A DNA stretch of 64,000 bases from Hydrolagus colliei (GCA_035084275.1 CM068771.1:2232001-2296000); one strand, 5' to 3'. Positions 3,001 through 44,586 are shown, numbered from the stretch's first letter. Program-made: numbers and translations. The notes: generated from the sequence alone by a model not told the origin.

Positions 3001-6000
3001 TTTTAATTGTGTTTTTTTTTACGGATTATTAGTAGGTGTGTGGAGTAAGGAAACTTACCAAGATTTCGTCCTGACTTGCTTGGATTCGAGCACAGGTCTC
3101 CGGTCTCCCAAGCTTGCAAGACAAGTGCTCTAACCACTAAGCCACAGGAGCTCAGTGGATTCATAGATTCATAGAGTTTTACGGCACAAAAGGAGGCCAT
3201 TCGGCCCATCTAGTCTGTGCCGGCTCTTTGAAAAGAGCGATTCAATCCCACTGCCCTGCCCGCTCCCCATAGCCTAATAGACCTGTTCTCGCTAAATAAA
3301 GATCTAATTCCCTTTTAAAAGTTGTTATCGAATCAGCCTCCACCACCTTTTCAGGCAAAGCATTCCAGATTCGAACAACTCGCTGAGTGAAAAAATTTCT
3401 CCTCAGCTCCCCTCTACTTTGCTTTGAAACTATTTTAAATCTGTGACCACAAGTCACAGATTCGCCCACGAGTGGAAATGGTTTTTCTCTATTTGCCCTG
3501 TCGAAACCCCTCATGATCTTATAAACCTCTATTAGGTCTCCCCTCAATCTTCTCTGCTCCAGAGAGAATAATCCTAGCTTATCTAGCCTCTCCTCATAGC
3601 TGAAGTTGAACAATGGAGTTGAAAGTCCTGATATGGGAGTTGACCCACAATTTTGTGAATCACAGACAAGAGAAACACAAACTGAACCGGATTGTTGATG
3701 GTTTTTTCCTCACAGTTTTTATTTAATTGCAGGATAAAGTGAAATCCTCCTTAGATTCTCTCACACAGAGGAAGGCCGCGGCTCTAGAAGCTGAAGTTAA
3801 ACAGAAACAAAAGATTTCACAAGTGAAGGTATGTTATGTTTGACCGATCGTGTACAGTCTAGTCTCCTAGTGTGTCTCTCTTTACTCTATGTTCACTGTG
3901 TGATGTCTCAGTGTGACTCTTCACTGTGTATTCATGGGGTAGTCTGACGTTTGATTTTTCAGGATCAGGTGAGCAGTCTGCAGATGGATGTCACGGCTGA
4001 GTTTGCTAAAATGTACCAGAACCTGACTGACAGAGAGCAGCGTGTAATCCGAGAGCTCAGACAGCGAGAGGAGGAGATTTTACACAGAATGGAGACAAAT
4101 CTGCGAGAGATTCAGAGCCAATTAGATTCTGTTCAGCGGAAGCTCTCAGGGTTACAGAAACAGATTGAGAAAGACGCACTAATCTTTCTGCAGGTAAAGA
4201 GATGGCATTTTAACAGTTACACACAGTCTGGAGATAAGTCTGACAGTTAAACAGATCAGTAATTTGATTAAATAATTTATTAAAAACCTCAAATGAATCA
4301 ATTAAAAACCTCTCCCTCCAAACAAGCAGCAGTTCTGACGAAGGGCTGTAGACCCGAAACATTGCCTTTTTTTCCGCTCTCCATGGATGCTGCCTGACCT
4401 GCTGAGTTTCCCCAGCCACTTTTGTTGATTCAGATTCACAGCATCTGTAGTATTTTGTGTTTTGTTTCAGTACTTTGGTTGATGTTTTCTTAGATTCTAT
4501 GAATGACTCTGCTGCTGCCAATCAGTACAGAAATAAACCCACATCAGTCACTCTCAGTGCCTGCAGTGTCCCTGCAAACCAACAGCCCAGGACAGATGTG
4601 GTTAAGAATAATAATAAGCCTTGCATTTGACATAGAGCTTTTCACATCTTATCGACGTCTGAAAGCGCTTCACAAGTTACCATGGAATTTACATTGATTG
4701 ATCGGTGTGAGAATGTTGGCATCTAATTACAGTATAATTATGTGTTATATCATGTGAGCTCAGATCTGTTTGTGTTTATTTCACTAGGAGGAAGCTGCTC
4801 GGAAGAGAAGGTATGAAAAGCTTTTTACAAAACATCCCCAGAATTTAATACCTGAAGAAACACAAAGTGTAGGTTCAATTTATAGTATGTTTGACTCTGA
4901 TTTCAGGATCAGTGATGAGGGTTTTACACTCTCAGTGTGTGAGGATGATCTGCCTGTGGGAATATACAACAGACTTGTACAATACACAGCCTGGAGAGAG
5001 ATGTTACCCAACATCAGTCCAGGTAAATGGCTCCCACTGTCACACTGAAGCTTTGTGAATATTGTTACATTCACCTGGATCCTCACAGGTTAAACATTGC
5101 AATGCCCTCCATAGCCTGAGGTCAGGTTGGATGATCCTATGCCTGTAGTACCGCGTTACCCTCAGCAGGTGGTGCTGTGTGAGCCCAACAGCCACTGCAG
5201 TCACACTGTCACCAGCGCCCTCTGCTGGCGGCGGGACAACATCACTGCAGTTGATTCTAACCCTCTGATGGGGATCAGTCACCAGCTCCCGGGTCCTAGT
5301 GCCCATCCCTTGACAATACTTTGTGTTGTTTCTCTCTCACTCCACTCTCTCTCACCACCTCACTACACTTTGTGCTGTTTCTTTTCCACCGTGCCTTTGG
5401 TCATCTTTCTACCCCTGGCTCAGTCCTGGGATCCGCTATTGTTAAGCGCTCTGAGACACCTTCCAACGTGGAGGACATTATATAAATCAAAGTTGTTGTG
5501 GTTGTTGTTGTTTCTCTCTCTCAGCTCCGGCCTCTCTGACTCTGGATCCTGAAACAGCCCATCCATTGCTCATCCTGTCTGAGGACCTGACCAGTGTGAG
5601 ACTCGGAGACACAGAGCAGCGACTCCCTGAAACCCCAAAGAGGTTTAGTTTCTGGCCCATTGTCCTGGGGTCTGAGGGCTTCACATCAGGGAGACATTAC
5701 TGGGAGGTGCAGGTGGGGAACAAGACAATGTGGATTGTGGGATTGGCCAGAGAGTCTGTCAACAGGAAACAACTAATCACATGGTCACCAGAGGAGGGGG
5801 TCTGGGGGGTGTGGTTGGTGGACGGGGACTATGTGGCTCTGACATCAACTCCCACCCCCCTGCCCCTGACAGTGAAGCCCGGGAAGATGGGAGTTTACCT
5901 GGACTATGAGGGGGGACAGGTGTCAGTTTACAACGCAGATAACATGTCTCATCTCCACACCTTCACCCAAACTTTCACTGAGAAACTGTATCCTCTATTT

Positions 6001-6060
6001 TGTCCCTTTCCTAACGAGGACGGAAACAACTCAGAGCCGCTGAAAATCTGCTGGTTATAA
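1..6060 (+). CDS. TRIM-A: RING-Bbox-coiled-coil-PRY/SPRY (B30.2) TRIM E3 ligase (TRIM39/TRIM69/A33-like class), 5'-partial
   Basis: Exons <1-251 (RING end, B-box [16 protein letters not shown]), 3733-3828 (96 bp), 3963-4193 (231 bp), 4788-4810 (23 bp), 4907-5022 (116 bp), 5525-6060 (PRY/SPRY: [30 protein letters not shown], stop TAA). All GT-AG with compatible phases; 96/231/23/116 is the typical TRIM exon series. Confidence 0.93.
300..2550 (+). mobile_element. Stack of decayed L2 fragments in TRIM-A intron 1 (mirrored at 61850-64000, partly shared with TRIM-B intron 1)
   Basis: Broken L2 motifs (RNLG.., [14 protein letters not shown]) and a (GTT)n tail at about 1180. Confidence 0.75.
2830..3159 (-). 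mobile_element. Orthologous copy of the tRNA-SINE in TRIM-A intron 1
   Basis: Reverse complement of 61231-61565. Confidence 0.85.
3160..3604 (-). mobile_element. CR1-clade LINE 3' end nested in a SINE
   Basis: ORF 3242-3613 ([44 protein letters not shown]), (TCTATGAA)-type tail; empty site at about 61230. Confidence 0.9.
5383..5508 (+). mobile_element. Severely truncated L2 tail in the PRY/SPRY acceptor tract (shared with TRIM-D, about 59245-59375)
   Basis: TSD TGTTTCT at 5376-5382 and 5509-5515; empty site in TRIM-C. Confidence 0.8.
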
Positions 6061-7266
6061 CCCGTTATGTTGATTATGTTGTTTATTGTTGTTGTTTGAT
6101 GCCCCCTCCCCATTTGCCCAATGGCCTCCCCCCCCCACCCCCACCCCTTCTTCGCTTACTCGCTTTCCCGGAGGCAGTACAGATATGGTTAATGATCAAA
6201 GAATCTCGATTGTATTCATGTATTGATGTGTCTATTATTAAATAAACTATTCTCACCGAGTTGGGATTGTCAAGTCTTTCGTGCCTCAAGGAATTGTACC
6301 AAAGCTAAGCATATTGGGCATGTTCACAATGGAATAGAGAAGGTTGAGAGGTGACATGATTACTGTCTTTCAGATTCTAAAGGGGAAATACAATATAGGT
6401 CATCACAGCATGGTTCAACTTGTCCAGAAAAGCAAAGACAGAGGAGTTGGCCTGTGATTGAAGGGGGTAAATTCAGAACAAACGTACGCAAACACTATTT
6501 CAGTGAGCGACTGGTGAACCTGTGGAACAGGCTTCCTAGGGGTTCGGTTGATTCTTTTAAACACAGATGAGCTGGTTTTCTTTTAGGGAATAACATTATG
6601 AGGAAAAGTATATAGGTAGTTTGGGACGTATGTGGAAGCAAATATACATATGAAGAATAAGGTAGCTTGACTAAAGAATATAATGCTTTGTGAACTGTAC
6701 AAAGTGTCGTTATATCCCAACTGATTGAGAAAAGAACAGACCGTTTCATCTTGTGTATCTGGCCTGTCTGGCTCCACACACTAGAGCAGCCCTGAGGTAG
6801 CTGTGGGGACAAGGACAGACCAGTTTGTCACTAACAATACACTAACTGACCTGTTAACCACAGAGGGGAAGGGCTTAGCACAAGAACTGGGGCCATAGAT
6901 ATAATAACAACAATAATAATAATCCCTGCCATTGATCTAGTGTCTTATCAAATCTTCAAGATGTCACAAAGCACTTCACTAGTCTGAGTGTGATCACTGT
7001 GTGACACACTCGCTCACATTCACACTCGCTCACACACTACAATCTGTGGAAGAAGGTTAGATCTCAGGGGGCAGTTACAGCTCAGTGGGGGTTATAGTTC
7101 AGTGAGGTAGGTCGCAGCTCAGGAGGGGAGGTTACAGCTCGGGCTCAAATAGAGAATTGTTTCCATCTCTGGAATGCTAATAATAATAATAATCTTTATT
7201 ATTGGAGGAAGACAGTCCTGGTCAGGGACTGAGTGTGAGGAATGAAGGACAACTGTGGGTCGAATG

Positions 7267-7634
7267 TAGGGTCCGGCGATTTATTGATATATCGGTTATA
7301 TCCGATATAATTTTCATATTGATATGCCGATATCGGAATTCAAAATACATCGATATATTCAAAAATTCTATGTATCGGAAAAATTTGATATATTGCAAAT
7401 ATCGATATATCGTTTCCGGCGATATATCGGTATATCGGAAGATGTCGGTATAATGCGGACTTTTTTAACTTACCTTGTCAATATCCAAATCCGAGTGCAC
7501 ACTGGAATGCGCACACATGTGCAGGACAACGAAAACACGCGATATTGATATCGGCAATATCAATATATCGGTATATATCGGTATGGGCAAACGGATATAT
7601 CTATATCGGAAAATTTCCATATTGACGGACCCTA
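7267..7634. mobile_element. Non-autonomous hAT transposon (MITE), 368 bp
   Basis: TIR TAGGGTCCG..CGGACCCTA; perfect 8-bp TSD GTCGAATG (7259-7266 and 7635-7642); many CGATA/TATCG subterminal motifs; empty site in the right arm at about 55875. Confidence 0.92.
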
Positions 7635-8554
7635 GTCGAATGTGACTCCAAATGTTGTGAACTGATTCAGAATGTCTGATGGATAGGCCGGAGAGGCTGA
7701 GGAGGTCAAAGTCACAGGTTAGAAGACATTGACAGGAGTCATGAGAATCACTTCATCTTCCTCCATTGCCAGTCCTCCATCATCCACCTCAATGGGACCG
7801 CACTCTCTTGGTTTAAGTACTACCTGACAAACCAGCAGAACTACATCCTTCCTCTGGGTGATGTCATCTGCAGGCTTTGGGGTTAACTCTACATGTGTGC
7901 GGATGAAGCCCAACTCTACTTTTCCACACCCAGTCTACTCCTCTCTTCCCACAGCAGTACCCACTCTCTCTGTTCTACTGGGACCAGCCATCTCCGTGAA
8001 TCCTCCGCTCCATCATTAGTGGCTTTGCAGGGAGAGGGAGGAGAGGGAGAGTGCAGTAGGAGTGGTTAGGGAGTAGGGGAGTAGAGATGGAGGAGCCAAG
8101 AGGAATTTGTTGGGGCAGGACAGTGGGAGAGGTAGGAGAAGAGGGTGGTGTACACACTATGGTCAAGTACACACTGGCACAAATGTTGTATGAAACAAAT
8201 ATAAATTTATTAATTCAGATTAGTGACAATATTGGTGATTAAAGGAATTCAATAGAATAATTCTTACGTATCCCTGTTTGATTCCCTCGATGGTGATGGT
8301 GACCAAACCAATGTTGCAAAAGAGATGGAGAAGTAAATTCCAATTCCATTCAATATCCTCCAAAAGGTATTCAGCTGCTGCTGCACAGATGCCCGTTCGA
8401 TCAGCCAAACAATGATCATGTACTGTTGCTTGGTTTGAGAGTGTCAATGGAGGTTGAGATTCATTGTAGTCATATTCTTTATCTTTCCTTCTTCTCCCTC
8501 TTGTTTCTCATTGATTGTGGAGTGTCTCTCTCTTGATCGGCAAGACTTTGCTTC

Positions 8555-8560
8555 TTTATT
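8555..8560 (-). terminator. Candidate polyadenylation signal of MHC-1
   Basis: AATAAA on the minus strand, the first I noticed downstream of the stop; conserved in MHC-2 at 53584-53589. Confidence 0.4.
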
Positions 8561-9388
8561 CCCAAAGTTAGAGGTGTTTAGTCCATACCTCCCGTGAGAA
8601 TGTTTGTTTTTACCAACACAGCTGTTTCTCCAGCTACAGATCATCTCTCCATTAGGAAGGCAGAGAAAAGGCCTGAAAAACAGTTTGCCATCCACACACA
8701 GTCCCCAGTCTCCTCTGCAAAGCCAGACAAACCAGCTCCCATCACAACTGACCAACCACATGTCTCAAATATACACATACTATTTATAAAAATGAGATAT
8801 TCATTTGACACATTAATTACAGATGTTACTAAACTAACACATTCTATGGTCACATGGAAATACCTGAGATTACACATTGTTACATACAATCACAAAGCAA
8901 CAAAAGCAACGTACTGACAGCTATACAGTCTCCAAATATACAGTCAATTCACTCTACAGTGTAGTCTGTGAAGTGGTTTGAGACATTGATAAGATGTGAA
9001 AAGTGCTATAACAAATGCAAGATAATAGTAATGTAGATAAATGCAAAGATTCAATAACAACAATAATATTACATTTGTATAGCGCCAATCATGTCGAGAG
9101 GACAACCCCAAGGTGCTGGACAGTGAATGGTTTAAAACAGTTGTGAAAATCAACTGAGGGGTGTCGAGAAAAAATGGTTTCACGCAACAGGTTCTACTGA
9201 CCTGGAAAGCATTGCATGAAATATCGCAAGAAGCCGATTGAAAAGTTTTATGAGAGAAGCAGAAACTTGTTTGGGAAGGACAAGTTTGCAGGGTTACAAG
9301 GAGAGAGTGGGAGAGTGGGAATATTTTGGACATCGCTTCTCAAAGAGCTGACACAGACACGATGGGCTGAATGACCTCCTTCTGTGCT

Positions 9389-9752
9389 CAGGGCCAGCAC
9401 TAGCTTTAGTCAAACTAGGCGGTAGCGTAGGGAGTCAAAATTTGGGGTAGTGCGCCAGTCCTAGTTACAGAGCACGTACAGTTTGCCACATACATCGAAA
9501 ATGACTGCTGTTATCTGCTGGCGTATAGTGGCAGAGGCGCGGGAGTTACCAGTAACCTGACTGGACAATGCTTAATACTTAAATACAACACAAGTGTGTT
9601 TTATATATGAATGTATAACTATCACCATTACTTTCATTGATAACTAATTACTGTATATGAATTTTTAGTATTAACATTAGCTTATCAAATGTTACTAGGG
9701 GCGCACATCTGAAGGCTCGCCTAGGGCACCATGTACTCTTGTGCCTTTCCTG
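9389..9752. mobile_element. Older hAT-like MITE (also at 52392-52755)
   Basis: Degenerate TIRs CAGGGCCAGCACTAG / CAGGAAAGGCACAAG (10 of 15 match); only partial 8-bp flank match. Confidence 0.4.
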
Positions 9753-9972
9753 TCTGCACAGTGTCATTCTGTTATTTTATGATATTTCAAATGTGACTTT
9801 AGTGGCTCTTAATATCTCTGTGAATCACAAGGTGATGGATCAGTTTCCAGCTTACACTTGATGCTGAGTTAAGGAATCTGCTGTTGAACCAGTGACTCTG
9901 AGAGAGAATCAGTGACCGAGAACAAAGGAGACACCAGAACACTCAGGCCTTCCCTCTGCTCCTCTCAGTCCC

Positions 9973-12900
9973 TCAGGCCGGCTCCTCCAGTCTCTGATCC
10001 TCACTCACTCCAGGTTCCTGAGAACAAAAATACAACCAAACTCCTCAGGTTGTTTTCTGCCCATAAATATACAACTAATTCACTTTACAGTGTATTCTGT
10101 AAAGCGCTTTGAGACAACTAGAAGATATGAAAAGCTCTGTATAAAATACAAGGATAATTATTATCATCTGCCAGGCAGTGTGACCCCCGAGCTGTTTCAC
10201 TCCTAGTGTCTGACACACAAGGAAACCCATTACCCTGATCAGCCGGGTGTCTGACGAATGTGGATATCAATAACTGCTTAAAGTGGCAAACGGGGTAAAA
10301 AATAAAAATATTTTTTTTTCATGTCAAAGTGTACTTTGGACTATATACTTTCAGAAATAAACTGTTTTGATTGGTGAAATAAAGTTATTTCCAAAGAAAT
10401 ATGGGGTAAAGAATAAGAATTCAACAATAAAGTGGAAGTGCTTATTTCAAATGTCGCATTCCCTATATTTCTTTGGAAATAAGTTTATTTCACCAATCAA
10501 AACAGTTTATATAGTTCCGAGTACACTTTGACATGACAACATTATTTTTATTTATTTTTATTTTTTACCCCACTTGCCACCTTAAGAGTTTCCAAGGCAG
10601 ATCAGATAGTTGTTCATGTGAATGCTCTGGCCTGCTCCACGTCAGTGACCCACCTTCCCGCTCCATCATTGGTGACTGGACCTTCAGAATTTCTGCCCCT
10701 ATCGTATAAAATTCCATCCATCCTTCTTTCCTCCTCACCCTCTCTCTTGCCTCCTTCCCCCTACCTGTGTCTCAAAAACCTCCTATTCGACCCAGCCTTC
10801 GGACACGTTCCTATCTCCCCCCCCCACTCCACCCCACCCCCCCATCCCCGATACCGATTTCCAGCTCGGTTTCAAACCCTGACATCCACGAGTTGGGACC
10901 ATCTCCTGTTGTTAACGACGCTGTGTAAATATGATTTTGTATTGTGTGTCACCAACACGCAAAATCTCCCTGTTTCTGGGATGGAGTGCATGCTCTCCCT
11001 CACTAGAGGGATGCATCCTGCATATCTAATTCCCAAGAGTGTTAGGTGCAGATTAGCAAAAGTTAAGCCTTAGGGAGCCCAGAGTGTGTGTTGGGGTGGC
11101 TGCTAGACTCTAAACAGCTGAACCCACACAGATTACCCACTGAGTGCTCTGTCTCTCAAGCTTCCCGCTGCTTGTCCAACCTCCAGGGCATTGGCCACAG
11201 GGATAACAGGAGCCAAGAGGGAAGAGAGACCGCCCCAGTGACCATTGGTAACCAGCTCAGGGTCATGGCCATGGCGACTGTGGCCACTGACTGACCAATA
11301 CCCTGTTAGCTTCACTGTGACCACTTCCCCATCTCAGGAAGGACAGGGCGAGGGAGGGGGATGGGCACAGTCACAGCCCAGCCCTGATCCTCACAGAGGG
11401 TTAGTGTTGGTTAGTGGCTGGTGATCACTGGAGGTCCTGTGGCTCTGACCAGCTCTTACCTGTGGCTGATTGTCGGATAGTGTCAACTGGCTACTGTCAG
11501 TACCTGTTACCAGAAACAGATGAAAGATCAAGTCAGAGTCAGACAAACAATATCTACATGTTACAGACACACAATAGCCATATACTAGTCAGCCAGACAA
11601 TATTTGTGAGTTAAAGTCAGTCAGAGAGAAATTGCTTGTGTGTCACAGATCAAAGAGCCAGACAGAAAACACCTGAACAACACTGTAGAGTTGTGTAAGT
11701 GAGGTGAGCATAGAACATGTCACACGTGTTGCACACACGTCCACTTGCAGAGTGTCACCTGACACTGTGTTCAGCCTCACTGTGATTCACTTACCGGATG
11801 GTCCTCTGTACTGGTGATTCCCGGGGCCTGTAAATAAACAAGCGTCAATTACAAACAGACCAGTGACACACAGACACACACAGACAACAGCCAGTTACAC
11901 ACAGAGATACAACACTCAGTCACATAATCACAGACACACCCATGTCACAACCCTTCAGAAACACATATGGATGCATACACACACACATATACACACACAA
12001 ACACATACACACACAAACACATACACACACACATATACACACACATACACAGATGCTGGATGTACCCTCAAAAACACACAGACATCAGGCAGATACACAC
12101 AGATATAAAACACTCAGTCACAGTCACACACAGATCCCAAGCATTCATACTCACACACACCCATAACAGCCAGTTACACACTGAGAGACAACAGCCAGTC
12201 ACACACACTCAGACATACACAGACCACAACCCTTCACAGATAACACACACAGAAAACTACCTGCTTTTACTCTCGCAGACAAAATCCATCACAGAAACAC
12301 AGAGACAAACAACGCTCAGTAATAGAGGGCCAATGATGCGATAGTTAGCACTGATGATACACAGACATGTGAGGTTGAGTTACTGAATGACTCTGAGCTA
12401 AAGCTCAGGGGAATCACAGCCCCCATCACCTTCTCTCTCATTTCCTCACCATTTTTCTCTCTTTTTATTTTCCAGATGAGAATCCCCACAACAATCCCAA
12501 CAGACAACAGGAAGATCCCGATGACCAAGCCAAGGATCCAGGAAACAGAAAGGTCCGGAGTTCTCTCTGTTTTCCCATTTGTATGGAGTGAACAGAAAAC
12601 AAACTTTCATTAAGATCCTGAGAGCAACAAATAGACTGTTACAAACACCTGTTTGGAGAAGACAGAGCGATCATCCATAGACAGGCTGACTCCTCGTGTT
12701 ATTCCCAGTTTCCCGCTGTGCTCTTGTATATGTGGTGGAGACACCTGTGCAGTTGACACCCAACTCTACTTCTCCTCAACTGTGAATACAGGTCCACTGA
12801 TGTCCTGTCAGCCGGTTGGTTAGACATCAAGGCCTGGATTAATTTAAAATTCCTGCAGATGAGGGATTGAGCAATAGTGTTGCAAACAGAAGCCATAATC

Positions 12901-15900
12901 CTTGGCTCCCATCAATATCTTCTCTTCTGCTGCTCTCACCTCCAGCTGTGAACCCAGATCTACTGTGTGCATGTCTCCGTATCAGAGAATGGATTGACTT
13001 CAAGATTCTCACACTAATCTACAAGCTCATGGCCACTCCTTACTTTTCCGACTAATCCCACTCCTCACTCCCCCAACTGCCCTCTCTGCTCAGCTGGCTC
13101 TGGCCTCCTACTTGCACTTGTCCCCTCTGCTCCACCTTCGGTGGCCTTCCTTTCAGCCACTAAGTTCTGAAACTTTCCAAACCTATTGCTCAGTCCCTCG
13201 GCATTGCTCCCTCCTTCCCCATTTTCAGATCACACCTGAAGACTTTACTCTTCCACCATAACTTTGGACACTTCCCGTGGCTTAGTGTGAGTCTCCACTA
13301 CTGTTAAGGGCTCAGAGACTCAGCCAATTTACCATTGTTGATCTTACCCCACGGCACCTCCATCGCTCCCTGGAGGCTGCTGTGCTCCAACAGACAGGAG
13401 AAGCCTTGCCCCTCCATGGAACCCGTCTCCAGCTCCATCTGCTTCATTATCTGAAAGGTGCCATCGTGGTTGGGTAATACACCTCTGGACACCACCTCGT
13501 GGACAGTGTTGACGTCCCTTGTCCAGGTCACCTCGATGGGCCGCGGATAGAAGCCAGTGACAAGACAGGAGAGAAGGGCTCTCCCCGCCAGGTCCCTCCT
13601 GTAACTGACTGAGACGTCAGGGCGGCCTGGGGAGGGGAGCACAGTCACACACAGCTCAGCACTGAGCCCACTCTGACACAGCAACAATAAATCACATAAC
13701 AAAATATTACTGTATTATACATAAAAACAGTCACTCACTCTGTCTCTGGAATGTGGATTTTGAATGCTGATAATATTGCTCCATTCGTGTAAAACAATAA
13801 TTCTCCAGTTGATGTTTCCAATGCTCGTTCATGGCTGTGTCACTGTCCAGTTTCTGTCTCAGGATCTGAGCCTCAGGAACAGCGGAAATCCATCTCAGCT
13901 CATTTTTATCGAAGCTGATAAAATCCTTACCATCAAATGCGACTGAGATGTGTCCATGTGTTCTGCCATCCTCACTCACTGCACAGCTATAAATCACCTG
14001 GGCATAGTGAACACCTGAAATAGCCATTCACAGCCATTCTGATAAGTGTGTCACTCACCAGATTTCTGATAAACACACAACAAGAACAACAACAACAACA
14101 ACGTACATTTATAGAGGACGTCCCAAGGAGCTGTATGGTTAGGTTGGGACCCAAGCAAGGTGTGGGCGGGATAGTTGGGGTAGGCTAGGGTGGTAGGAGA
14201 ATAGGAAAGGTGGGACAGTTACGAGGGCAGCAGAACGGATGGTCAAAGAGTAAGGTCTTCATACCGGCCTTGAAAGAGGAAAGGGAGAGGAAGCGAGGTG
14301 AAGGGATTGCGGGATGGAGTTCCAGAGTGTGGGGGCAGAGAGGCTGAAAGCCCGGCCACCGATGATAGGGCAGTTCGGGCAAGGGACATGGAGCAGGCCA
14401 GAGCCCACGGAATGGAGGGGATGGGAAGGCTGATAGGAGGCTGCAAGTCAGAGAGATATGTGTGCAAGCCCGTGAAAGAGAGGATGAGGATCTTGAACTC
14501 GATCCTCTGAGGAATGGGGAGCCAGTGGAGATGGGCAAGGGTGGGAGTGATATGGTCGTGGAGCCTAGTGCGGGAGAGTTCTGAATAATCTGCAGATTGT
14601 GAAGGGTGGAGCAGGGAAGGCCAACGAGGAGAGTTCCGATAGTTGAGCCTTGATGTGATGAATATGTGTATTAGTAGAATCATAGAATCTTAGAATCTTA
14701 AGGCACAAAAAGAGGCCACTCGGCCATTGGGTCTGTGCCGGCTTCTTGAAAAGTGCAATTAAATCCCACTCCCCAGCTCTCTCCCCAGAACATAAGAACA
14801 TAAGAAGTAGCAGCAGGAGTAGGCCATTCGGCCCATTTGGCCTGCATTCACCAACTCTGAGTGAAGAAGTTTTCTTCTCAACTCAGTGCGAAAGGGCTGA
14901 CCCCTAATTTTAAGACTGGGACCCCTGGTCTCTTCATATAAGATAATGAGTTTGAGGCTGTGGCCACAGTTGTGGGTCCAAGACTTTATGTGGAGGTGAG
15001 ACTAGTGTCCCAGTCCTTGCCAGACGCACTCGCTCTCTGTCTCGTAGAGGATCGATTTCAAGATCCTCACTCTTGTTTTCAAATCCCTCCACTCCTCTGT
15101 AGCCCCCTACCTCGCTGACCTCCTCTCTCCTCACAATAGCATTGGTTGCCTTCGCTCTACCACGTCTGGCCTCCTCTGTGTTCCCTGAATCAATCCGCTC
15201 TACCATCGGTGGCTATGCCTTCAGGCACTAAGCCACGAAGCTCTGGAACTCCCTTCCTCACTCCCTTTGCCTCGCTCCTCTCTTCCTATTTTCAGATCTC
15301 GGCTAAAGACCTTTCATTTCGACCGCACTTTAGGAATATCTTCTACCCCTTCCCCCTAGCTCAGCCCAGTGATCCTTTATTGGGAAGCACTCTGAGATGC
15401 CATCCAGTGTAGAGGGCACTATATAAATCCAAGTTGTTGTTGAGCTCATGGATCATGATGTTTTGATTTTGGGGTGGTATTGGGAGCGGACGTTTTGCGG
15501 TTGAATGTGAATTAATGATCTGTCGGAGGAAGGTTTGAAGGGAGGGTAGCATGGGCTTGAGGCACTGGGGAGAAATTATTTTGCAGGTGAGTGCCTTTCG
15601 GATGTGGGGGTTGGAGGTGTGGTGTTGGGGAGAGTAGGCGATGGGGCAGTCTGGTTGGCTGCTGTGGGACAACCATCAGCGTGATCCTTGGGAGCCTGGT
15701 AGAAGATGCTTAGGCTGGAGCAGAGGGAGGTAATGCTGGGGTCCAGGAGAGAGAGAAAGTGAGGAAGGAATTGGGAGAGGACTATTGGGAATAGTGGAAT
15801 GTGGAGAATTTTCATGGGGTGGCTCACAATAGCACACAGACACTCACTGACTCCCTCCCTCTCACATTGAACCACATTAACACAGAAACACGCAGTGAAA

Positions 15901-18900
15901 AGTGCCGGACGTTTACAATATATATTAAACCAAGCCTCCCTTGGTCTCTCCCCCTTCTTGTCTGGCTGTTTTCCCCTCTTTCGAGCACCTCACGCTCCAC
16001 CATCCCTCCCTTTCCTTAAAAATCCTCCTTCTTTATCGTCCTCCTAAACCCCCTGGATCTTTCATCTCCGATATCTCCACTCTCCTCCCTGTCCCTCAGC
16101 TCCGAACGCCTACTCATCATGGGCGACTTCAACCTCCACCTAAACTCCCCCTGTGCCACCTCTTCTGAATTCACTGCCCTCCTCTCCTCCCTAAACCTCA
16201 ACCTCCACATTGCCTCTCCAACCTACAACCGTGGCCACGCCCTTGACCTCATTATCACCCATGGCCTTAACATTTCCGACCTCAGCATTTCGGACAAGGC
16301 CATCTCGGACCACCTTCTTGTCTCCTTCTCCTCTTCCATTCCTCTACCCTTCCACAAGCCCTCAACCATACTTTTCCACCCATGGGAAAGTCTCCCCGCT
16401 GAGACCCTCACAGATGCCCTCACATCCTCTGACCTCCTACCTCTCTGGTCTTCCACACACAGCGATCCTGAAGCAGCTGTCCAGCTGCTCCATGACCACC
16501 TCTCCTCCACCTTGAACTCCCTCGTCACCCTGAAATCCAGATCCATCTCCAACTCCACCCGCTCCCCCTGGTACAACTCTCATCTCCGCACCCTCAAATG
16601 CCAAACCCGGCTGCTCGAGCGCAGGTGGCAGAAAACTGGCCTCACGGTTCACCACCAACTGTGGCTTGAGCAACTCCACAGCTACCGCCGTTCCTTGTGT
16701 CAAGCAAAAGTGGCCTACTACTCCAACATCATCCTGGAGGCAAACAACAACACCAAAGTCCTCTTTTCCATCACCCACCACCTCCTCCGTGCACCCCCTC
16801 AGGCCTCCTCAATCTTCACTTCAAATGCGAAGTGCGAGGAGGTCACGGACTTCTTTTCTTCCAAGATCCACAACATCCGCCAGGCAGCATCATCCTCCAG
16901 CCTCTCGTCTCCCACTACCACCCCCACCCCATCCCCCTCAACCCCCCCCACCTTCAGCTCCTACCTCAACCCCCTTCCTACACTCCTTCTCCCCCATCTC
17001 TCCTTCCTCCCTCTCACGCACTCTCACCTCTATGAGGCCAACAACCTGCTGCCTCGATCCCATCTCCACTAACCTACTGCTCACCCAACTCCCCCTCCTC
17101 TGCCCACTGCTAGCTGATATCATCAACCAGTCCCTCTCCTCCGGATCAGTCCCTGCCCCCATCAAAACTGCTGTCATCACCCCCCTCCTTAAAAAACCCT
17201 CCCTAGATCCCTCAAACCCCAGCCACTACCGCCCTATCTCAAACCTGCCCTTCCTCTCAGAAGCACAGGAACGCGTTGTCGCAAACCAACTCCGTGCCCA
17301 CCCATCCTCCCACTCCCTCTTTGAACCCCTCCAGTCCGGTTTACACCCTACCCACAGTACAGAGACTGCGCTTGTGAAAGTCACAAACGATGTTCTCTCT
17401 ATCTGTGACCAGGATTCCCTCTGCCTCCTTAACCTCCTGGACCTGTTGGCTGCCTTTGACACAGTCGACCACGCCATCCTCCTCCACCACCTGTCCTCCG
17501 TCATCCACCTCAGTGGGACCGCACTCGCCTGGTTCGAGTCCTACCTCACAAACCGCCAGCAGTACATCTCCACAAACGGTTTTTTCTCCCGCACTCAACC
17601 AGTTACCTGCGGGGTACCCCAGGGATCCATCCTTGACGCCCTCCTTTTCCTCATCTACACGCTTCCTCTTGCGGATGTGATCCACAGACATGGGGCACAC
17701 TTCCACATGTACGCGGATGACACCCAACTCTATCTCTCCACTTCACTTTGTGACCCCCAGTCCCCCGATGTGGTGTCAGACTGCCTTTCAGCCATCAGGG
17801 GCTGGATGAGCACAAAGGTCTTGCAGCTGAATGTTGACAAGACGGAGGCCATACTCCTGGGCTCTCATCAACGTCTCCATTCGCATGGCTCTCACCTCCT
17901 CCACCTTCCCGCTCTGCCCCTAAAACTCACCGAACCTGTGCGCAACCTTGGCATCAGGTTCGACGCCCAACTGTCCTTCCTCCCCCACATCCGGTCCGTC
18001 ACCAGCACTGCCTTCTACCACCTCCGCCGGATCGCCCGTCTCCCGCAATACCTCACCTTAAAAGCCGCTGAAACCTTGGTCTACGCCTTCGTCACCTCTC
18101 GGCTGGACTATTGCAACGCCCTCCTCACCGGTCTCCCCTCCACCACAATCCACAAAATCCACCTTATCCAGAACTCTGCCGCCCGATACTCACCCACTCT
18201 AAGCTTCGCCCCCCATCACCCCAGTCCTTGCCAGACTTCACTGGCTCCCTATCCCAGAGTGGATCAACTTCAAGATCCTCACCCTGGTTTTCAAATCCCT
18301 CCACTCCTCTGCACCCCCCTATCTCTCTGATCTCCTCTCCCCCCAACCCAGCACCCGCCGCCACCGCTCCTCTGGGTCTGGCCTCCTCCATGTCCCCCGA
18401 GTCCTCCACTCCACCTTCGGCGGCCGTGCCTTTAGCCACTACGCCCCGAGGATCTGGAACTCCCTTCCTCACTCCCTTCGCCTCGCCCCCTCTCTTCCCA
18501 GTTTCAGGTCACAGTTGAAGACCTTTCTCTTCGACCGAGCTTTTGGTCACCTGCCTGCCCCTGCCCCTGGCTCGGTCCCGGGATCCGCTACTGTGAAGCG
18601 CTCTGAGACGCCTTCTGGCGTGGAGGGCGCGATATAAATCGAAGCTGTTGTTGTTGTAAACCACTCACCGCTCGTAATATTCCTCCTCTTCATCATGTAA
18701 ACCATATTCTCCTTGAATAATACATGCTCTGCCTTATTCTCCTCTACATTTATGTATATGCGATGTGCTCTAAGAGCCTCCTGTAAACTCGGTATCCGGG
18801 TAACAATTCTCTGACTGTTGCTGTTGTAGCGATACATCTCAACATCATCCACCATCACTGTACGGCTGTACTCTGGGAAATCTCCATCTCCTGACATCAA

Positions 18901-20123
18901 CGTGTGGAACCCTCTCAACGCCCGAGGCTCTGTCAGACACAAACACACAGACTGATTGTACATGTGTAACAGTTCACTCTGAGCACATGCTGAGCACACA
19001 CTTCACACTCATTGTGTGTGTCCTGAACACACACAGATCACAGTGTACACAGAGCTCACTGTGTACAGTGTGCACACTGTACAGTGGGGAGAGCAATCTC
19101 ACAGAACTGTGATAGACTGACAAAAGGAATCCAGGTGCAATCTCTGTTCCCATCAACTCTAACCCCGAGCCATTCCCCCCACCACCGCAGCCACTGACCC
19201 CCTCCCCCAGCCACTGACCCCCTCCCCCAGCCACTGACCCCCTCCCTCAGCCAATGACCCCCTCCCCCAGCCACTGACTCCCTCCCTCAGCCACTGCCCC
19301 CCTCTCCCAGCCACTGACCCCCTCCCTCAGCCACTGACCCCCTCCCTCAGCCAGTGACCCCCTCCCCCAGCCACTGACACTCTCCCCCAGCCACTGACCC
19401 CCTCCCCCAGCCACTGACCCGCTACCTCAGCCAGTGACCTCCTCCCCCAGCCACTTACCCCCTCGCTCAGCCACTGACCCCCTCCCCCAGCCACTGACCC
19501 CTTCCCCCAGCCACTGACCCTCTCCCCCAGCCACTGACCCCCTCCCCCAGCCACTGACTCCCTCCCCCAGCCACTGGCCCCTACTGCTCCCCCACCTCAA
19601 CAAACCCTCTCACAGCTCCACATCTCAGCCCCTAAGCTACCCCTAAACACTCACTCATCACCTCAATACACTCTTAGCCCCTCAACAAAGCCTCAAACTC
19701 CCTTCCCCTCAACACACCCTCTGTACAACCTCATCCACAGCCTCAGTACCTCAATACCTCCGTCAACATACCCTCAGTCACTCAACAAACCCTCATCTCT
19801 TCAAGACACCCGTCAACCCCACAACAAAACTCAACACAGACATCAAAAAATCAACACACCCTCAAAACACATCCAACACCTGCCCTTCCCCAGCCTCTCT
19901 CCCACTCAACCCCAAACCTTCCCCCAGCCACTATCCACCTCAACCCCTTCCCCCCAAAACACTCCCAGTCATTCCCCCCACTCCCCCAGCCTGAGCCCCA
20001 TCCCTGATCTTAGCCTAATAACAAACAGTAACAGTCAGAGTCTGGTGGCCACTTACTGTACAGCCCCCCACACACAGACAGGAGGACAGGGAGAGCCATC
20101 AGAGACCTTATCATCCTGGCCAT
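9973..20123 (-). CDS. MHC-1: non-classical MHC class I-like heavy chain, complete and open
   Basis: Minus-strand exons: leader 20057-20123 (MARMIRSLMALPVLLSVCGGLY), alpha1 18669-18929 (261 bp; VDD, N86-type glycan site RNIT), alpha2 13739-14014 (276 bp; C..C pair, AFDGKDFISFD), alpha3 13348-13626 (279 bp; C1-Ig CLVTGFYPRPIEVTW..LPNHDGTFQ..CLLEHSSL), TM 12450-12566, cytoplasmic 11795-11827 (33 bp, Tyr), 11460-11503 and 9973-10017 (EPGVSEDQRLEEPA*). All GT-AG, phases consistent. Confidence 0.92.
10282..10581. mobile_element. Palindromic MITE, Kolobok-type (TTAA TSD, RR termini), 300 bp
   Basis: About 130-bp imperfect TIRs (AGTGGCAAACGGGGTAAAAAA / GGTGGCAAGTGGGGTAAAAAA; shared CTGTTTTGATTGGTGAAATAAA); TTAA at 10278-10281 and 10582-10585. 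Confidence 0.8.
11870..12310. repeat. Degenerate (CA)n-rich microsatellite (mirror at 51180-51585)
   Basis: CA/TA runs between the TM and first cytoplasmic exon; source of the spurious His/Thr ORFs. Confidence 0.9.
14090..14660 (-). mobile_element. L2 3' fragment in MHC-1 intron 2
   Basis: [26 protein letters not shown] and an (AAC)n tail on the + strand. Confidence 0.8.
15933..18656 (+). mobile_element. L2-clade LINE, 5'-truncated in the endonuclease, with frameshifted EN-RT ORF2
   Basis: APE motifs (LYRPP, GDFNLH, GHALDLIIT), RT motifs ([16 protein letters not shown]), (GTT)n tail; 7-bp TSD TAAACCA at 15926-15932 and 18657-18663; absent from the MHC-2 paralog. Confidence 0.92.
19188..19580. 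repeat. 20-bp minisatellite (CAGCCACTGACCCCCTCCCC)n, about 19 copies
   Basis: Exact 20-bp periodicity in MHC-1 intron 1. Confidence 0.95.
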
Positions 20124-24599: not shown

Positions 24600-24653
24600 G
24601 CCACGCCCACACTGTCACCGAGTCACCAAACAAGGAAGTTAGACAAGGAAGTG
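24600..24653 (+). promoter_or_regulatory. Sp/KLF and tandem ETS motifs upstream of TRIM-B
   Basis: GCCACGCCC followed by two AAGGAAGT. TRIM-C has GCCACACCC, AAGGAAGT and AAGGAACT at the same positions (41831-41882, minus strand). Confidence 0.4.
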
Positions 24654-24665
24654 TTGGGGCTGAAA

Positions 24666-27600
24666 ATGGCTTTCAGAGATCAGGTTCAGAGTCTGACCGA
24701 GGAGTTAAACTGTCCGATTTGTCTGGAATACTTCAATGATCCAGTGACCCTGGAATGTGACCACAACTTCTGCCGCTCCTGTATCACAAGGTCCTGGGAA
24801 AAGCAGGAGACAAACTCCTGTCCGGAATGTCGAACGGTGATTCCAGGAACTAACCTGAGACCCAATCGTGCGCTGCGTAATCTGACAGAAAAAGCTCGGA
24901 ATCTGAGCCTGAATCTGACACAAGCTGAAAAGAAGCTTCACTGTGAGGAGCATCAGGAGGAACTGAAGCTGTTCTGTGAAACAGACAAGAAACTGATGTG
25001 TGTGATTTGCAGAGATGCCCGAGAGCACAGAAACCACAGCTTCATCCCCATTAAGGAGGCCGTTCAGATCTATAAGGTAAAACACACCAGATTGTCAATT
25101 GTGTTCAGTTTTGTCTTTTAAATGTGATATCCCTCCACAGCACCGGAGTCACCTCGAGTCACCTGAACTCCCTCACCCACTCTGGCCTACCTCCCGCACT
25201 ATCCTATCCTCCTCCCTCACTCTCCTCCATACAACCCTCTCCACTACTCTCGATTCACTTGCCCCTCTCACCTCCTGAACCGCCTCCTATTCACAAATCT
25301 CACCTCAGTTCTCCATCGAAATCTGCTGCGTCAAGGGTCAGGTGCGTGTCACCGAAGGCACCTGAATCATATCTGGCCTCACTGTCAACCAGTAACCGGT
25401 GAATATATTCCTGAATCAGTACACAACCTGGGCATCAGGTGCGACCCCCCAATTATCCTACCTCCCTTACATCCATTCCCTCACCAGCGTCGCCTTATAT
25501 TTCTGCCAGTTACTGGTCTCCGCCACTATCTCACCCCCAAAGCTGCCGAAACTCTGGTTCATTCATTTGTCATCTCTCAGCTGGACTACTGCAGTGCCCT
25601 CTTTGCCGTTCTCCCCTCCGCCACCATTCACAAAATCCAGCTCATACAGAATTCCATCGCCCGCATTCGCACCCAAACCAAATTTTGCTCCCTCATTACC
25701 CCAGTTCTTGACAGTTTTCACGGCTCCCTGTCACAGACCAGATCAACTTGAAGATCCTCACTTTAGAGTTTAAATCCCTCCACTCCTCTGCACCCCCCTA
25801 CCACTCCTCTCTCCTCACAGCAGTACCCTCTGTCTCTGCTGTACTGGGTCTGGCCTCCTCCTTGTCCCCAAATCATCCACCGTGTGTCTGCAGCCACTAC
25901 GACCCAAAGCTCTGGAACTCCTTCCCTCAATCCATTCCCCTTGCCCACTCTTTTTCCATTTTCAGGTGGTGCCTGAAGACATTTCAATTTGACCGCACCT
26001 ACGGTCACTTTCCCCAACGCTGTAGCTAAGCCCCATGCTTCACTATTATGAATCGCTCTTAGGTGCTGTCTATCATGGAGGGTGCTATATAAATGCAAGA
26101 TGTTGTTGTTGCTTGCAAAGCTTACTGTTCCACTCCCGCCTCTACCAGGTAATCTTTAGATGAGAAGAGCAATCCCAGCTCCTATTCTCCACAAACGGCT
26201 CCTCATCCAAACCCGACTCCAAGAGTAGCCTCTTCCATCCTGTAACTTCCATTGTGAGGAGATGCTGGATTTACTCGAGTCCAAAATCGAGGGAATGCAT
26301 TCAGCTGCCTCTGCCTCACAACTGCCACCTTTCCCTTCCTCATCTCCCACATCACCACATTCCGACCCAGGTTTGACCCCTAATTGTCCTTCCTCCCCCA
26401 CATCCGGTCCATCACCAGCATCGCTTTCTTCAATGTGTCCAAAATAGAGAGAATCCGCTCCGCGGTTTCCTCCCCCCACCTCTCCTCCACCTCCGCCCCT
26501 CCATCCGTTATTTCAACCCTCACCCAACCCCCCCTTCATACTTTCATCCCCACCTCCCCGTCTTCAATCACTAAAATAATCACCTCCATTCCTACCTGAC
26601 CCACCGTTTACAATTTGTATCTTCTAACGGTTTCTCCTCAAACCCCCGCACAGTTTCTCATGGCGTCCCTCAGGGCTCTGTCCTCGGCCCCCTCCTTTTC
26701 ACCATTTACACGCTCCATCTGGGCGATGTCATCCGCAAACATGGGGTAAATTTCCACATGTATGCGGACGATACCCAGCTGTACCTTTCTGCCTCATCCC
26801 TCAACCCCCAGACCATCGATGTTCTGATAGCATGTCTGTCCGACATTGAGTCCTGGACGAGGGACAACTTCCTCCAATTGAACGTGAGTAAGACCGAGGC
26901 CCTCCTGATTGGCTCAAGCCAGCGCCTCCGCACATCGGGCGCTGCCAGCCTCAACATCCAAGGCTGTACTCTCCACCTCACACAGCCAGTCAGGAACCTC
27001 GGCATCACGTTCGACCAAAAACTCTCCTTCCTCCCCCACATCCGTGCCTTGACCGGCACCGCTTACTTCCACCTGTGCAACATTGCCAGGCTCCGCAATT
27101 ATCTTACCCCCCACGCTGCCGAAACACTGATGCATGTGTACATCACCTCAAGGCTGGACTACGGAAACTCTCTCCTCGTCGGCCTCTCCAGTTCCTCCAT
27201 TCACAGGCTGCAGGTCATCCAAAACTCTGCAGCCCATGTACTATCCCACACCCACCTCCGCGACCACATAACCCCCACCCTCGCCCATCTCCACTGGCTC
27301 CCCATCCTCCAGAGGATCGAGTTCAAGATCCTCGTCCTCACCTTCAAGGCCTTACATGGCCTTGCCCCGCCCTATTTAACCAATTTACTCTCCCCCTACA
27401 AGCCCACCCGGACCCTCCGTTCAGCAGGACTTGGCCTGCTCCAAGCCCCCCGCCCGAACCGCCCCACCATCGGAGGCCGGGCCTTCAGTTTTTCTGCTCT
27501 GACCCTATGGAATTCCATCCCCCAATCCCTCCGTCTCGTTGCTTCCCTTTCCTCTTTCAAGGCCGGTTTGAAGACTTTCCTCTTCGACCATGCCTTTTGT

Positions 27601-44350: not shown

Positions 44351-44586
44351 GTGAGAGTCTGATCAGAGACAGTATTGGGGTTAGAGCTGAGAGGCTGTGG
44401 TGGGGAGCAGAGGGTCTGGCTGGACAGACAGACAGACTGTCAGTGTCAGTGACCAGCCATGGCCAGGATGATAAGGTCTCTGATGGCTCTCCCTGTCCTC
44501 CTGTCTGTGTGTGGGGGGCTGGACAGTAAGTGGCCACAGACTCTGTTACTGTTTGTTCTTATTGATTCTCTTGTTATTTGGGGGAG

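Follow-up and report, generated by a model that had tools for sequence, protein, structure and literature searches.

The minus-strand interval 20123..9973 in a 64-kb window from Hydrolagus colliei (the whole stretch of DNA that was analysed, 64,000 nucleotides) covers exactly, from start to stop codon, an intact MHC class I heavy-chain gene, here called gene A, which belongs to a multigene family that has so far been seen, among the sequences searched, only in holocephalans (chimaeras). Judged from its sequence, gene A keeps the residues needed for folding and for sitting on beta2-microglobulin (beta2m). Because its groove has lost most of its anchors and diversifies between copies, its product probably displays something different from standard peptides. 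With a probability of roughly 0.55, gene A would be a functional class Ib heavy chain of this holocephalan family, associated with beta2m and presenting non-canonical ligands specific to each paralogue.

A preliminary description had placed a class I-like gene at 9973-20123, and these coordinates match a complete minus-strand gene of eight exons encoding 373 amino acids with no internal stops. Exon 1 (20057..20123; all exons on the minus strand) comprises the start ATG at 20123 and the leader (MARMIRSLMALPVLLSVCGGLY), and ends in phase 1 at a GTAAGT donor. By eye, an ATTGG Y-box-like motif and a GAAACT half-site lie ~130-160 bp upstream of the ATG, and intron 1 contains a 20-bp minisatellite of ~20 copies (19188..19581). 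The alpha1 domain is encoded by exon 2 (18669..18929, with G7, S51, R59, I60, R84 and N86-I-T), the alpha2 domain by exon 3 (13739..14014, with C101, F123, W133, L143, K146, L147, Q159, C164, R167 and Y171) and the alpha3 immunoglobulin C1-set domain by exon 4 (13348..13626). These three exons measure 261, 276 and 279 nt and are phase 1 at both ends; in the translation, Pfam MHC_I (PF00129) matched residues 26-197 at 6.4e-22 and C1-set (PF07654) matched residues 214-286 at 5e-15. Exon 5 (12450..12566) encodes the connecting peptide, the transmembrane helix (WILGLVIGIFLLSVGIVVGILIW) and a basic stop-transfer stretch. The cytoplasmic tail is divided among exon 6 (11795..11827; GPGNHQYRGPS), which corresponds to the tail of Callorhinchus milii (elephant fish) V9KN34 (P0011), exon 7 (11460..11503; GTDSSQLTLSDNQPQ) and exon 8 (9973..10017; EPGVSEDQRLEEPA), which is homologous to the P0011 end EPGASEERRMEERS and closes with a TGA stop whose final base is 9973. 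The V9KN34 tail has the same three-part organisation. A read-through of exon 7 to a downstream stop was dropped, exon 8 being recognised by homology to the C. milii tail. The gene devotes one exon to each domain, with junctions in phase 1, and has a transmembrane exon followed by short cytoplasmic ones.

Residue calls were made from MAFFT alignments of HLA-A2 with 12 to 62 other class I sequences, and they bore out the earlier by-eye alignment. Relative to HLA-A2, the residues lost are Y7>G, Y59>R, T143>L, W147>L, Y159>Q and W167>R, as well as W51>S and W60>I, while R84, F123, K146, Y171, the N86 glycan site (NIT sequon), both disulfides (C101/C164 and the alpha3 cysteines) and Q96/D119/G120/D122 are kept. 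In classical class I molecules, nine residues bind the peptide termini: Y7, Y59, Y/R84, T143, K146, W147, Y159, W167 and Y171. By this classical (UAA type) standard, gene A retains three of the nine (R84, K146 and Y171). The alignment runs gap-free to positions 159-171 from the invariant C164, to 143-147 from W133 and to 84 from the N86 sequon, and these fixed points, together with the helix boundaries of the model described below, make the register hard to shift. Nor is the residue pattern due to chance, since L143, L147, R/H59, S/G51, K146 and Y/F171 are found in all seven family members compared; R84 is present in most copies. As read from the aligned residues, the hydrogen-bond network that clamps a peptide N-terminus is gone, with Y7, Y59, Y159 and W167 lost and Y171 remaining, and the F-pocket, or C-terminal, end of the groove is remodelled yet family-invariant (Y80, M81, F123, L143, K146 and L147). 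The loss of six of the nine termini-binding residues favours the earlier proposal that the ligand is not a canonical 8-10mer peptide, but peptides anchored in an atypical way could still be accommodated.

For the closest paralogue, P0001 of C. milii, AlphaFold2 predicted the canonical fold confidently (pLDDT 86.4, pTM 0.77), with helix boundaries that coincide with those of HLA-A2 and both helices of normal length. Superposition of this model on chicken BF2, MR1, carp and shark class I gave TM-scores of 0.81-0.91 (normalised to target length). The earlier claim of a folded molecule is thus supported by prediction for this paralogue rather than for gene A itself. The best solved-structure matches of gene A were peptide-presenting class I molecules of carp, chicken and anole along with shark 9CH4 (E 1e-42 to 1e-37). 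Class I heavy chains associate non-covalently with beta2m; we infer that the gene A product pairs with it, and the product would also reach the cell surface.

Relatives of gene A comprise ~14 C. milii database entries, several apparently isoforms of one gene, with identities of 58-72% overall and 84-88% in alpha3; an identical protein was not found in the databases searched. The family profile used exon-wise translations of gene A, and among 1.84 billion representatives the family makes up three 50%-identity clusters, all from C. milii, with the next-nearest class I at ~35% identity. Thus the protein is highly divergent, as the preliminary description had it, but it is not alone: the C. milii copies carry the core substitutions of gene A, sharing R/H59, S/G51, L143, K146, L147, Y/F171, Y80 and M81. 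C. milii scaffold MU250313.1 holds at least five intact family paralogues along with a choline-transporter-like gene, and the models there (P0001, P0002, P0003, P0005; V9KN34) have the same exon structure and length as gene A and align with it gap-free across alpha1, alpha2 and alpha3. The pocket residues G7, N63, E66, N67, Q159 and Y163 of gene A differ from those of the C. milii copies, and its connecting peptide is four residues shorter. DNA identity between the window and C. milii, introns included, is 71-85%; synonymous divergence is 0.43-0.50 in alpha1/alpha2 and just 0.08-0.10 in alpha3. Such distances point either to a chimaera other than C. milii or to an old cluster of paralogues. 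Among the C. milii copies themselves, the alpha3 exons are identical at synonymous sites, whereas alpha1 and alpha2 have diverged. UniProt V9KN34, which we take to derive from a transcriptome, suggests by its database source that at least one family member is transcribed.

The trees represented chondrichthyan UAA/UBA-type sequences, Squalus UCA, putative UEA, teleost and tetrapod class I and a CD1d-like sequence; UDA, UEA, UFA and UGA were absent as named references. A protein search seeded with Squalus UCA returned few useful shark sequences. The C. milii copies and the window genes formed one clade with 100% support, in which the window copies are a subclade of their own, and this clade fell outside the anchor-keeping chondrichthyan UAA/UBA-type clade. 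A constraint that placed the family inside the latter cost 22.8 log-likelihood units (AU p = 0.042); one that placed it beside the C. milii anchor-keeping genes cost 25.8 (p = 0.033). In the alpha1/alpha2 tree, the family was sister to an elasmobranch lineage typified by PDB 9CH4 (ultrafast bootstrap 99, SH-aLRT 44), and SH-aLRT rose to 90 when other long branches were removed. The alpha3 and full-length trees left this relation without resolution, and the family and the 9CH4-type group each joined another long branch once the other was removed. A sister relation is therefore suggested, but it may reflect long-branch attraction. The preliminary description could not place the protein in a named lineage. 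It does lie outside every lineage represented, but it nests in a C. milii multigene family, with the same substitutions, that is already in the databases; our literature search on chimaera class I found nothing specific and no paper naming this family.

Pocket positions are more variable among the paralogues than the rest of alpha1/alpha2 (entropy 1.05 vs 0.48, Mann-Whitney p = 2e-5). With the pocket set defined as 37 codons from the HLA-A2 pockets, dN/dS for pocket vs non-pocket codons was 2.21 vs 0.69 in five C. milii copies and 1.48 vs 0.45 in all seven copies. Random 37-codon sets reached the observed ratio in 216 of 5000 draws for the five C. milii copies, so that the excess within C. milii is marginally significant (p about 0.04), and in 16 of 5000 for all seven; the observed dN was reached in 0 and 1 of 5000, respectively. 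On these codon comparisons, the copies differ mainly at positions lining the A, B, C and D pockets, where dN is higher than dS. The F-pocket positions 80, 81, 123, 133, 143, 146, 147 and 160 are invariant among the seven copies.

These patterns bear on the alternative that gene A encodes a class I-like molecule without a ligand, its groove empty or closed, that serves only as a surface ligand or partner of a receptor, like MIC/ULBP, HFE, FcRn or vomeronasal M10. The loss of six termini-binding residues along with W51 and W60 would fit such a molecule, as would the raised entropy of helix-top positions (0.74 vs 0.48 for the rest of the domain, p = 0.04), which is expected with receptor-driven diversification; moreover, a high pocket dN would equally arise in an unused, unconstrained groove. 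However, pocket dN exceeds dS, which is more than mere relaxation, and because one half of the groove is invariant while the other half varies across the seven copies, the groove appears to be in use. The normal length of both helices in the P0001 model and the Pfam profile also argue against it: MHC_I matched strongly, MHC_I_3 reached only 0.0029, under its cut-off, and an NKG2D-ligand-type model was not among the matches to gene A. We consider the ligand-free alternative unlikely.

The window also contains an inverted paralogue of gene A, gene B (44459..51988, plus strand; exons 44459-44525, 46930-47190, 49436-49711, 49822-50100, 50882-50998, 51619-51651 and 51945-51988), which is a pseudogene with an in-frame TGA at 49663-49665 (codon 167) and no exon 8. 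The left arm of the large inverted duplication spans 389..14023, with its partner at 64000-49427 and 94-97% identity between them. A TRIM-type gene lies between the two class I copies (24651..33790, plus strand; RING and B-box exon 24651-25121, PRY/SPRY exon 33125-33790), and further TRIM-like exons occur at 12-452 and 5566-6060 on the plus strand and at 41829-41359, 36551-36132 and 59167-58703 on the minus strand, so that both copies are flanked by TRIM genes. Classical class I genes are highly polymorphic, ubiquitously expressed and closely linked to TAP and immunoproteasome (PSMB8/9) genes; the content of this window, a single haplotype, is two class I copies, TRIM genes and retroelements.

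Given such a twin, gene A could be a recent duplicate that is non-functional or decaying, its disabling mutation still to come. Several features of gene A are in keeping with decay. G7 is unique within the family. Intron 2 (14015..18668; 4.65 kb, against just 2.2 kb for its counterpart in copy B) has received an antisense LINE-type retroelement with plus-strand ORFs at 16119-17072 and 16666-18330, the latter encoding a reverse-transcriptase domain (Pfam RVT_1 7e-25). At the exon 5 acceptor position of C. milii, AG has become AA, so gene A needs an acceptor 12 nt downstream of the site expected from the C. milii proteins. Finally, dN/dS between genes A and B is 0.55-0.66 across domains, which fits relaxed constraint on one copy but could instead mean that gene A itself is decaying. 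Against this, all eight exons are open and all introns GT-AG over 10 kb, and every family-invariant structural residue is present. The replacement acceptor is in frame and, being common to gene A and copy B, is older than the duplication, and non-pocket codons show an A/B dN/dS of 0.49 despite one copy being dead. Decay is, in our judgement, less likely again than an empty groove.

Presentation of a lipid or other non-peptide, as by CD1, MR1, chicken YF1 or shark UFA/UGA, draws on the sister grouping with a possibly lipid-binding lineage, on the change of both T143 and W147 to leucine, and on a sheet floor of small aliphatics (A95, V97, I114 and V116) with nine groove aromatics vs 12-16 in classical molecules, which would make for a larger cavity, but it is the least likely of these alternatives: the 37 pocket residues have a mean hydropathy of -0.39 and a net charge of +3, so that the groove does not exceed classical molecules in hydrophobicity and lies far below CD1d-like (1.07) and 9CH4-like (0.24-0.88) values, the window genes have Q and the C. 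milii copies E, H or R at position 43, never lysine, a YxxPhi endosomal motif was not found in the gene A tail, which reads YRGP, and the sister grouping behaves like long-branch attraction.

If gene A is a functional, beta2m-associated class Ib molecule, its ligand would be held chiefly at the conserved F-pocket end, and the other end of the groove would set the preference of each paralogue. The likeliest ligand would be a peptide that does without the usual free-N-terminus clamp, that is, one N-terminally blocked, extended or acidic, which would suit the positive charge that R59, R167 and R24 give to the A-pocket region of gene A; a polar non-peptide ligand seems less likely. As in other class Ib families, the readers may be T-cell or NK-type receptors. 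The family would evolve by birth and death with exon-level homogenisation, and the window shows a recent inverted duplication in which gene A would be the live copy and gene B is the dead one. In a broader proposal, the family would be the holocephalan branch, and the 9CH4 type the possibly lipid-binding elasmobranch branch, of a class Ib lineage that already existed before chimaeras and elasmobranchs separated, over 400 million years ago. In chimaeras it would have expanded, its hydrophobic groove giving way to a polar, cationic one, and would have become subject to diversifying selection, giving a panel through which innate-like lymphocytes are shown an unrecognised ligand class (e.g., N-blocked or anionic peptides, or metabolites). 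We hold this proposal to be doubtful.

Within the most ancient group of jawed vertebrates to have an MHC, no branch has been studied less than the chimaeras. They possess an expanded class Ib family of their own that differs from the elasmobranch lineages compared here, with one half of the groove frozen and the other under diversifying selection. The general picture of MHC evolution is unchanged by this family, which is already present in public databases as C. milii gene models and transcripts, but it supplies actual genes with which ligands can be eluted, structures solved and receptors sought. Published MHC surveys have called chimaeras data-deficient (PMC10751288).

Among known systems, the cartilaginous-fish UAA/UBA-type molecules (nurse shark UAA, PDB 6LUP; Triakis UAA; C. 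milii V9L0X9 and V9KZ04) have the same fold and domain order as gene A and share R84, N86, both disulfides, the beta2m-contact residues and an LPNHDGTFQ-type alpha3 motif, with alpha1/alpha2 identity of ~30-35%. The UAA type and C. milii V9L0X9 and V9KZ04 have all nine termini-binding residues, in contrast to three in gene A, and UBA-type molecules (Heterodontus O19480 and Mustelus P0097) retain fewer than nine. PDB 9CH4, with orthologues in Pristiophorus (P0090) and skate (P0251/P0253), is the second-best solved-structure match of gene A (1.3e-41), and the alpha2 alignment is gap-free. Both share residues that are rare in UAA (Y22-S23, Y94 and Y172) and a hydrophobic residue in place of T143. 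Unlike gene A, the 9CH4 type retains Y7, Y59, W51, W60 and W147, its groove is more hydrophobic and aromatic-rich, and sharks and rays have just one or a few copies of it, in contrast to the chimaera multigene family. Our naming of this lineage as UFA or UGA is a guess, because the PDB label reads only 'Ig-like domain-containing protein'; a literature search on PDB 9CH4 and shark CD1-like structures found nothing specific. The shark UFA/UGA lineages are said to bind lipids (PMC12562908).

Like gene A, shark UEA and dogfish UCA are nonclassical and without the invariant termini-binding residues. Squalus UCA (Q8HWI9, P0030) has L143 as gene A does, but it lacks the C101-C164 disulfide and N86 and is ~31% identical, and the family does not group with it or with its shark neighbour P0211. 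Almeida et al. are said to have described UEA in 2021 as a large multigene family with a markedly hydrophobic groove, UEA and UCA being the most hydrophobic among chondrichthyan class I; both reportedly have not been found in chimaeras. Membership in UEA/UCA was rejected on the lack of clustering with UCA and on the pocket hydropathy of gene A, which is not hydrophobic. UDA, which Almeida et al. reportedly found in 2020 to keep eight of nine termini-binding residues and a highly conserved groove, was set aside on a comparison by description only, since gene A keeps three and the groove positions are the most variable of its family.

In CD1 molecules the groove is deep and hydrophobic, and the tail carries a tyrosine-based endosomal sorting motif; the hydropathy, charge, YRGP tail and sub-threshold MHC_I_3 score of gene A all speak against a CD1 identity. 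MR1 uses K43 to form a Schiff base with its ligand and is strongly conserved across species; K43 is absent here, and MR1 structures match gene A worse than classical ones do (1e-34 vs 1e-42), so this identity was rejected as well. Pfam MHC_II_alpha gave a faint match (E 0.009, 16 bits vs a cut-off of 23). The W-category has class II-type architecture, with separate alpha and beta chains that each carry one membrane-distal and one Ig-like domain (PMC8713811), whereas gene A has alpha1, alpha2 and alpha3 on one chain in one gene; a place in this category was rejected on that ground.

Parallels in mode of evolution and probable logic are offered by Xenopus XNC (mhc1-uba) and the teleost L-lineage, which, like the chimaera family, are lineage-restricted, multicopy class Ib genes with divergent grooves that lack the classical anchors; they have no specific sequence relationship to it, and the likeness is one of analogy only. 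In Xenopus, each XNC gene restricts one innate-like T-cell subset (PMC12562908). The chimaera family adds one more independent case to the rule that nonclassical class I repertoires are built separately in each vertebrate group.

Close relatives of the intact class I gene of the window (gene A) were found only in the chimaera Callorhinchus milii. When 5.8 billion proteins were queried by word-seeded search, about 14 C. milii entries matched gene A at 58-72% identity, with all others at 37% or less. Among 1.84 billion cluster representatives, scanned exhaustively with an HMMER profile, close relatives made up three clusters only, all from C. milii. The next HMMER matches were generic class I proteins of cyprinids, gadiforms, lungfish, coelacanth, sturgeon, caecilians and sharks, at ~30-37% identity in alpha1/alpha2. 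Five intact paralogues lie on one unplaced 49-kb C. milii scaffold, MU250313.1, and its DNA is 71-85% identical to the window, introns included. All copies share a signature in HLA numbering (R/H59, S/G51, F/I60, L143, K146, L147, Y/F171, Y80 and M81), and the class I copies of the window form a subclade of their own. Together with the DNA divergence, this places the origin of the window in a different chimaera species or in a separate, old cluster. A solitary status of gene A was not borne out: it belongs, as the live copy next to a dead one, to a multigene class Ib family of chimaeras that is visible in C. milii data and for which literature searches found no published name.

The coding span of gene A coincides exactly with that in the preliminary description, running on the minus strand from an ATG at 20123 to a TGA that ends at 9973. 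An uninterrupted frame of 373 codons is distributed over eight exons (20123-20057, 18929-18669, 14014-13739, 13626-13348, 12566-12450, 11827-11795, 11503-11460 and 10017-9973) separated by canonical GT-AG introns. Their order is that of a textbook class I gene: leader, alpha1, alpha2, alpha3 (the last three of 261, 276 and 279 nt, all phase 1), a connecting-peptide/transmembrane exon and three short cytoplasmic exons. The cytoplasmic tail of C. milii UniProt entry V9KN34 has the same three-part organization as exons 6-8, which supports the 3' gene model; given the transcriptome origin of this entry, it also supports transcription of the family. The protein matches Pfam MHC_I (6e-22) and C1-set (5e-15), and its top solved-structure matches (1e-42 to 1e-37) are peptide-presenting class I of carp, anole and chicken together with the unnamed PDB entry 9CH4. 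A faint match to the Pfam class II alpha-chain domain in alpha1 (protein residues 42-107; E 0.009, below cut-off), which precomputed annotation also gives for several C. milii members, probably reflects just the shared ancestry of the membrane-distal domains.

Repeats occupy parts of the locus. Intron 2 (4.65 kb) harbors an antisense LINE-type retroelement with a reverse-transcriptase ORF (16119-18330, plus strand), and related fragments, some with RT-like ORFs (e.g., 26758-27714), are dispersed across the window. Intron 1 contains a 20-bp minisatellite, CAGCCACTGACCCCCTCCCC (19188-19581; ~20 copies, 88% matches), whose translation yields GGGQWLGEGVSGWG repeat ORFs. By eye, an ATTGG (Y-box/CCAAT-like) motif, a TGAGTCA site and a GAAACT half-site were seen ~130-160 bp upstream of the ATG (20240-20300, minus strand), with long (CA/GA)-rich simple repeats further upstream.

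We aligned the gene A protein with HLA-A2 and, successively, with 12 and 62 further class I proteins. Every residue loss noted previously was reproduced (Y7G, Y59R, T143L, W147L, Y159Q, W167R, W51S and W60I), as was every retention (R84, the N86 sequon, K146, Y171, F123, C101/C164, the alpha3 cysteines and Q96/D119/G120/D122). Of the nine residues that bind peptide termini, only three are kept. With the fold-critical and beta2m-contact residues in place, the evidence supports the proposal of a class I molecule that folds but lacks canonical peptide anchors. The register is fixed by invariant landmarks (R6, the N86 sequon, W133 and C164, gap-free through 171), and in an AlphaFold2 model of the closest C. 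milii paralogue, P0001 (pLDDT 86.4, pTM 0.77), helix starts and ends match those predicted from the alignment. Given these landmarks and the modeled helix ends of the paralogue, a structural realignment that brings back the anchors would be very unlikely.

Using tblastn, we found a second class I copy (copy B) at 44459-51988 on the plus strand. Its reading frame is interrupted by a TGA at 49663-49665; gene A has CGA (R167) there, and the change is a CpG transition in the codon for residue 167. Copy B also lacks exon 8, as the ~1.3-kb segment carrying this exon in gene A (9808-11096) has no counterpart. Because of the nonsense codon and the missing exon, copy B is a pseudogene. In both copies the exon 5 acceptor expected from the C. 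milii proteins (DGKT...) reads AA rather than AG (12567-12578, 50870-50881), and use of an in-frame AG 12 nt further downstream shortens the connecting peptide by four residues. The window is essentially palindromic, with 389-14023 matching 64000-49427 at 94-97%. The alpha1 exons of the two copies are only 89% identical (dS 0.20 vs 0.03 in alpha3), which suggests that other paralogues acted as conversion donors or that alpha1 changes faster.

Four TRIM-type genes flank and separate the copies in the order TRIM, class I, TRIM, then TRIM, class I, TRIM. Their exons (RING + B-box; PRY/SPRY = B30.2) lie at 12-452, 5566-6060, 24651-25121 and 33125-33790 on the plus strand and at 41829-41359, 36551-36132 and 59167-58703 on the minus strand. 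The SPRY ORF at 36551-36132 is truncated, so that TRIM gene may be damaged. In vertebrate MHC regions, TRIM genes often lie beside class I genes; within the 64-kb window, no TAP, PSMB or beta2m gene was found. In C. milii, a choline-transporter-like (SLC44-type) gene (L003 249-3225, scaffold MU250313.1) adjoins the class I cluster. In human, SLC44A4 belongs to the MHC class III genes and has paralogues in MHC-paralogous regions, and the SLC44-type neighbor hints at MHC or paralogon linkage of the C. milii cluster.

Variation within the family is concentrated in the groove. Among seven sequences, mean entropy was 1.05 at positions corresponding to the HLA-A2 pockets and 0.48 in the rest of alpha1/alpha2 (p = 2e-5). 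The most variable sites (7, 63, 66, 67, 70, 73, 74, 99, 155 and 159) line the A, B, C and D pockets, and the F-pocket end (80, 81, 123, 133, 143, 146, 147 and 160) is invariant. By the Nei-Gojobori method on exon sequences, dN/dS was 2.21 at pocket and 0.69 at non-pocket codons for the five C. milii copies, and 1.48 and 0.45 for all seven. Random 37-codon sets reached the observed dN/dS in 216/5000 (five copies) and 16/5000 (seven copies) draws, and the observed dN in 0/5000 and 1/5000, respectively. The alpha3 exons of the five C. milii paralogues (MU250313.1: 7125-7400, 15953-16228, 27307-27582, 39307-39582 and 46167-46442) have zero synonymous differences and alpha1/alpha2 dS is ~0.12, indicating that the 3' half has been homogenized while the ligand-binding exons were kept diverse. 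In comparisons of the window with C. milii, dN and dS are about equal in alpha3 (0.08).

Gene A is thus an intact gene in which the N-terminal clamp is lost and the F-pocket end is conserved yet remodeled (K146 kept, R84 and N77 usually, and a family-specific Y80), within a family that shows diversifying change at the other pockets and birth-and-death evolution. From its sequence, we infer that its product would be a membrane-bound, beta2m-associated class Ib molecule. A ligand would be held chiefly at the conserved F-pocket end, with a specificity that would differ from paralogue to paralogue. The gene A pocket residues have a net charge of +3 (R24, R59, R84, K146 and R167 vs E66 and E70) and include fewer aromatics than those of classical molecules (9 vs 12-16). 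The most probable ligand is a peptide held with no free-N-terminus clamp; R59 and R167 would disfavor a free alpha-amino group. A non-peptide ligand of polar character is less probable. A product acting as a ligand-free receptor partner is improbable. Decay of gene A itself, the fate of copy B, is slightly less probable still, given the open frame and canonical introns. Least probable is a lipid presenter: pocket hydrophobicity is no greater than in classical molecules (mean Kyte-Doolittle -0.39).

Among known lineages, UDA, which keeps 8/9 anchors, does not fit, nor do UEA/UCA, whose grooves are hydrophobic and which are not known from chimaeras. CD1 is excluded by pocket hydropathy and a tail without a YxxPhi motif, MR1 because the family lacks K43, and W-category identity by architecture (PMC8713811).

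Maximum-likelihood trees (63 sequences, LG+C20+F+G4) included UAA/UBA-type chondrichthyan class I (with nurse shark 6LUP and two C. milii genes keeping all nine anchors), Squalus UCA, likely UEA-type shark sequences, the 9CH4-type lineage, class I of teleosts, gar, sturgeon, coelacanth, lungfish, amphibians, reptiles and human, and one CD1d-like sequence. The family formed a clade with 100% support and a long stem (~1.2 substitutions per site), outside the clade uniting all anchor-keeping chondrichthyan class I. Constraining it into that clade cost 22.8 log-likelihood units (AU p = 0.042), and placing it beside the C. milii anchor-keeping genes cost 25.8 (p = 0.033); this separation is suggestive, not decisive. 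In the alpha1/alpha2 tree, the family was sister to the elasmobranch 9CH4-type lineage (bootstrap 99, SH-aLRT 44), which has orthologues in a sawshark and skates. When the 9CH4-type rows were removed, the family joined a long coelacanth branch instead; conversely, removal of the family sent the 9CH4-type lineage to another long branch. The grouping therefore behaves like long-branch attraction. PDB 9CH4, whose entry carries no such name, may be one of the lipid-binding shark UFA and UGA crystal structures mentioned in a review (PMC12562908).
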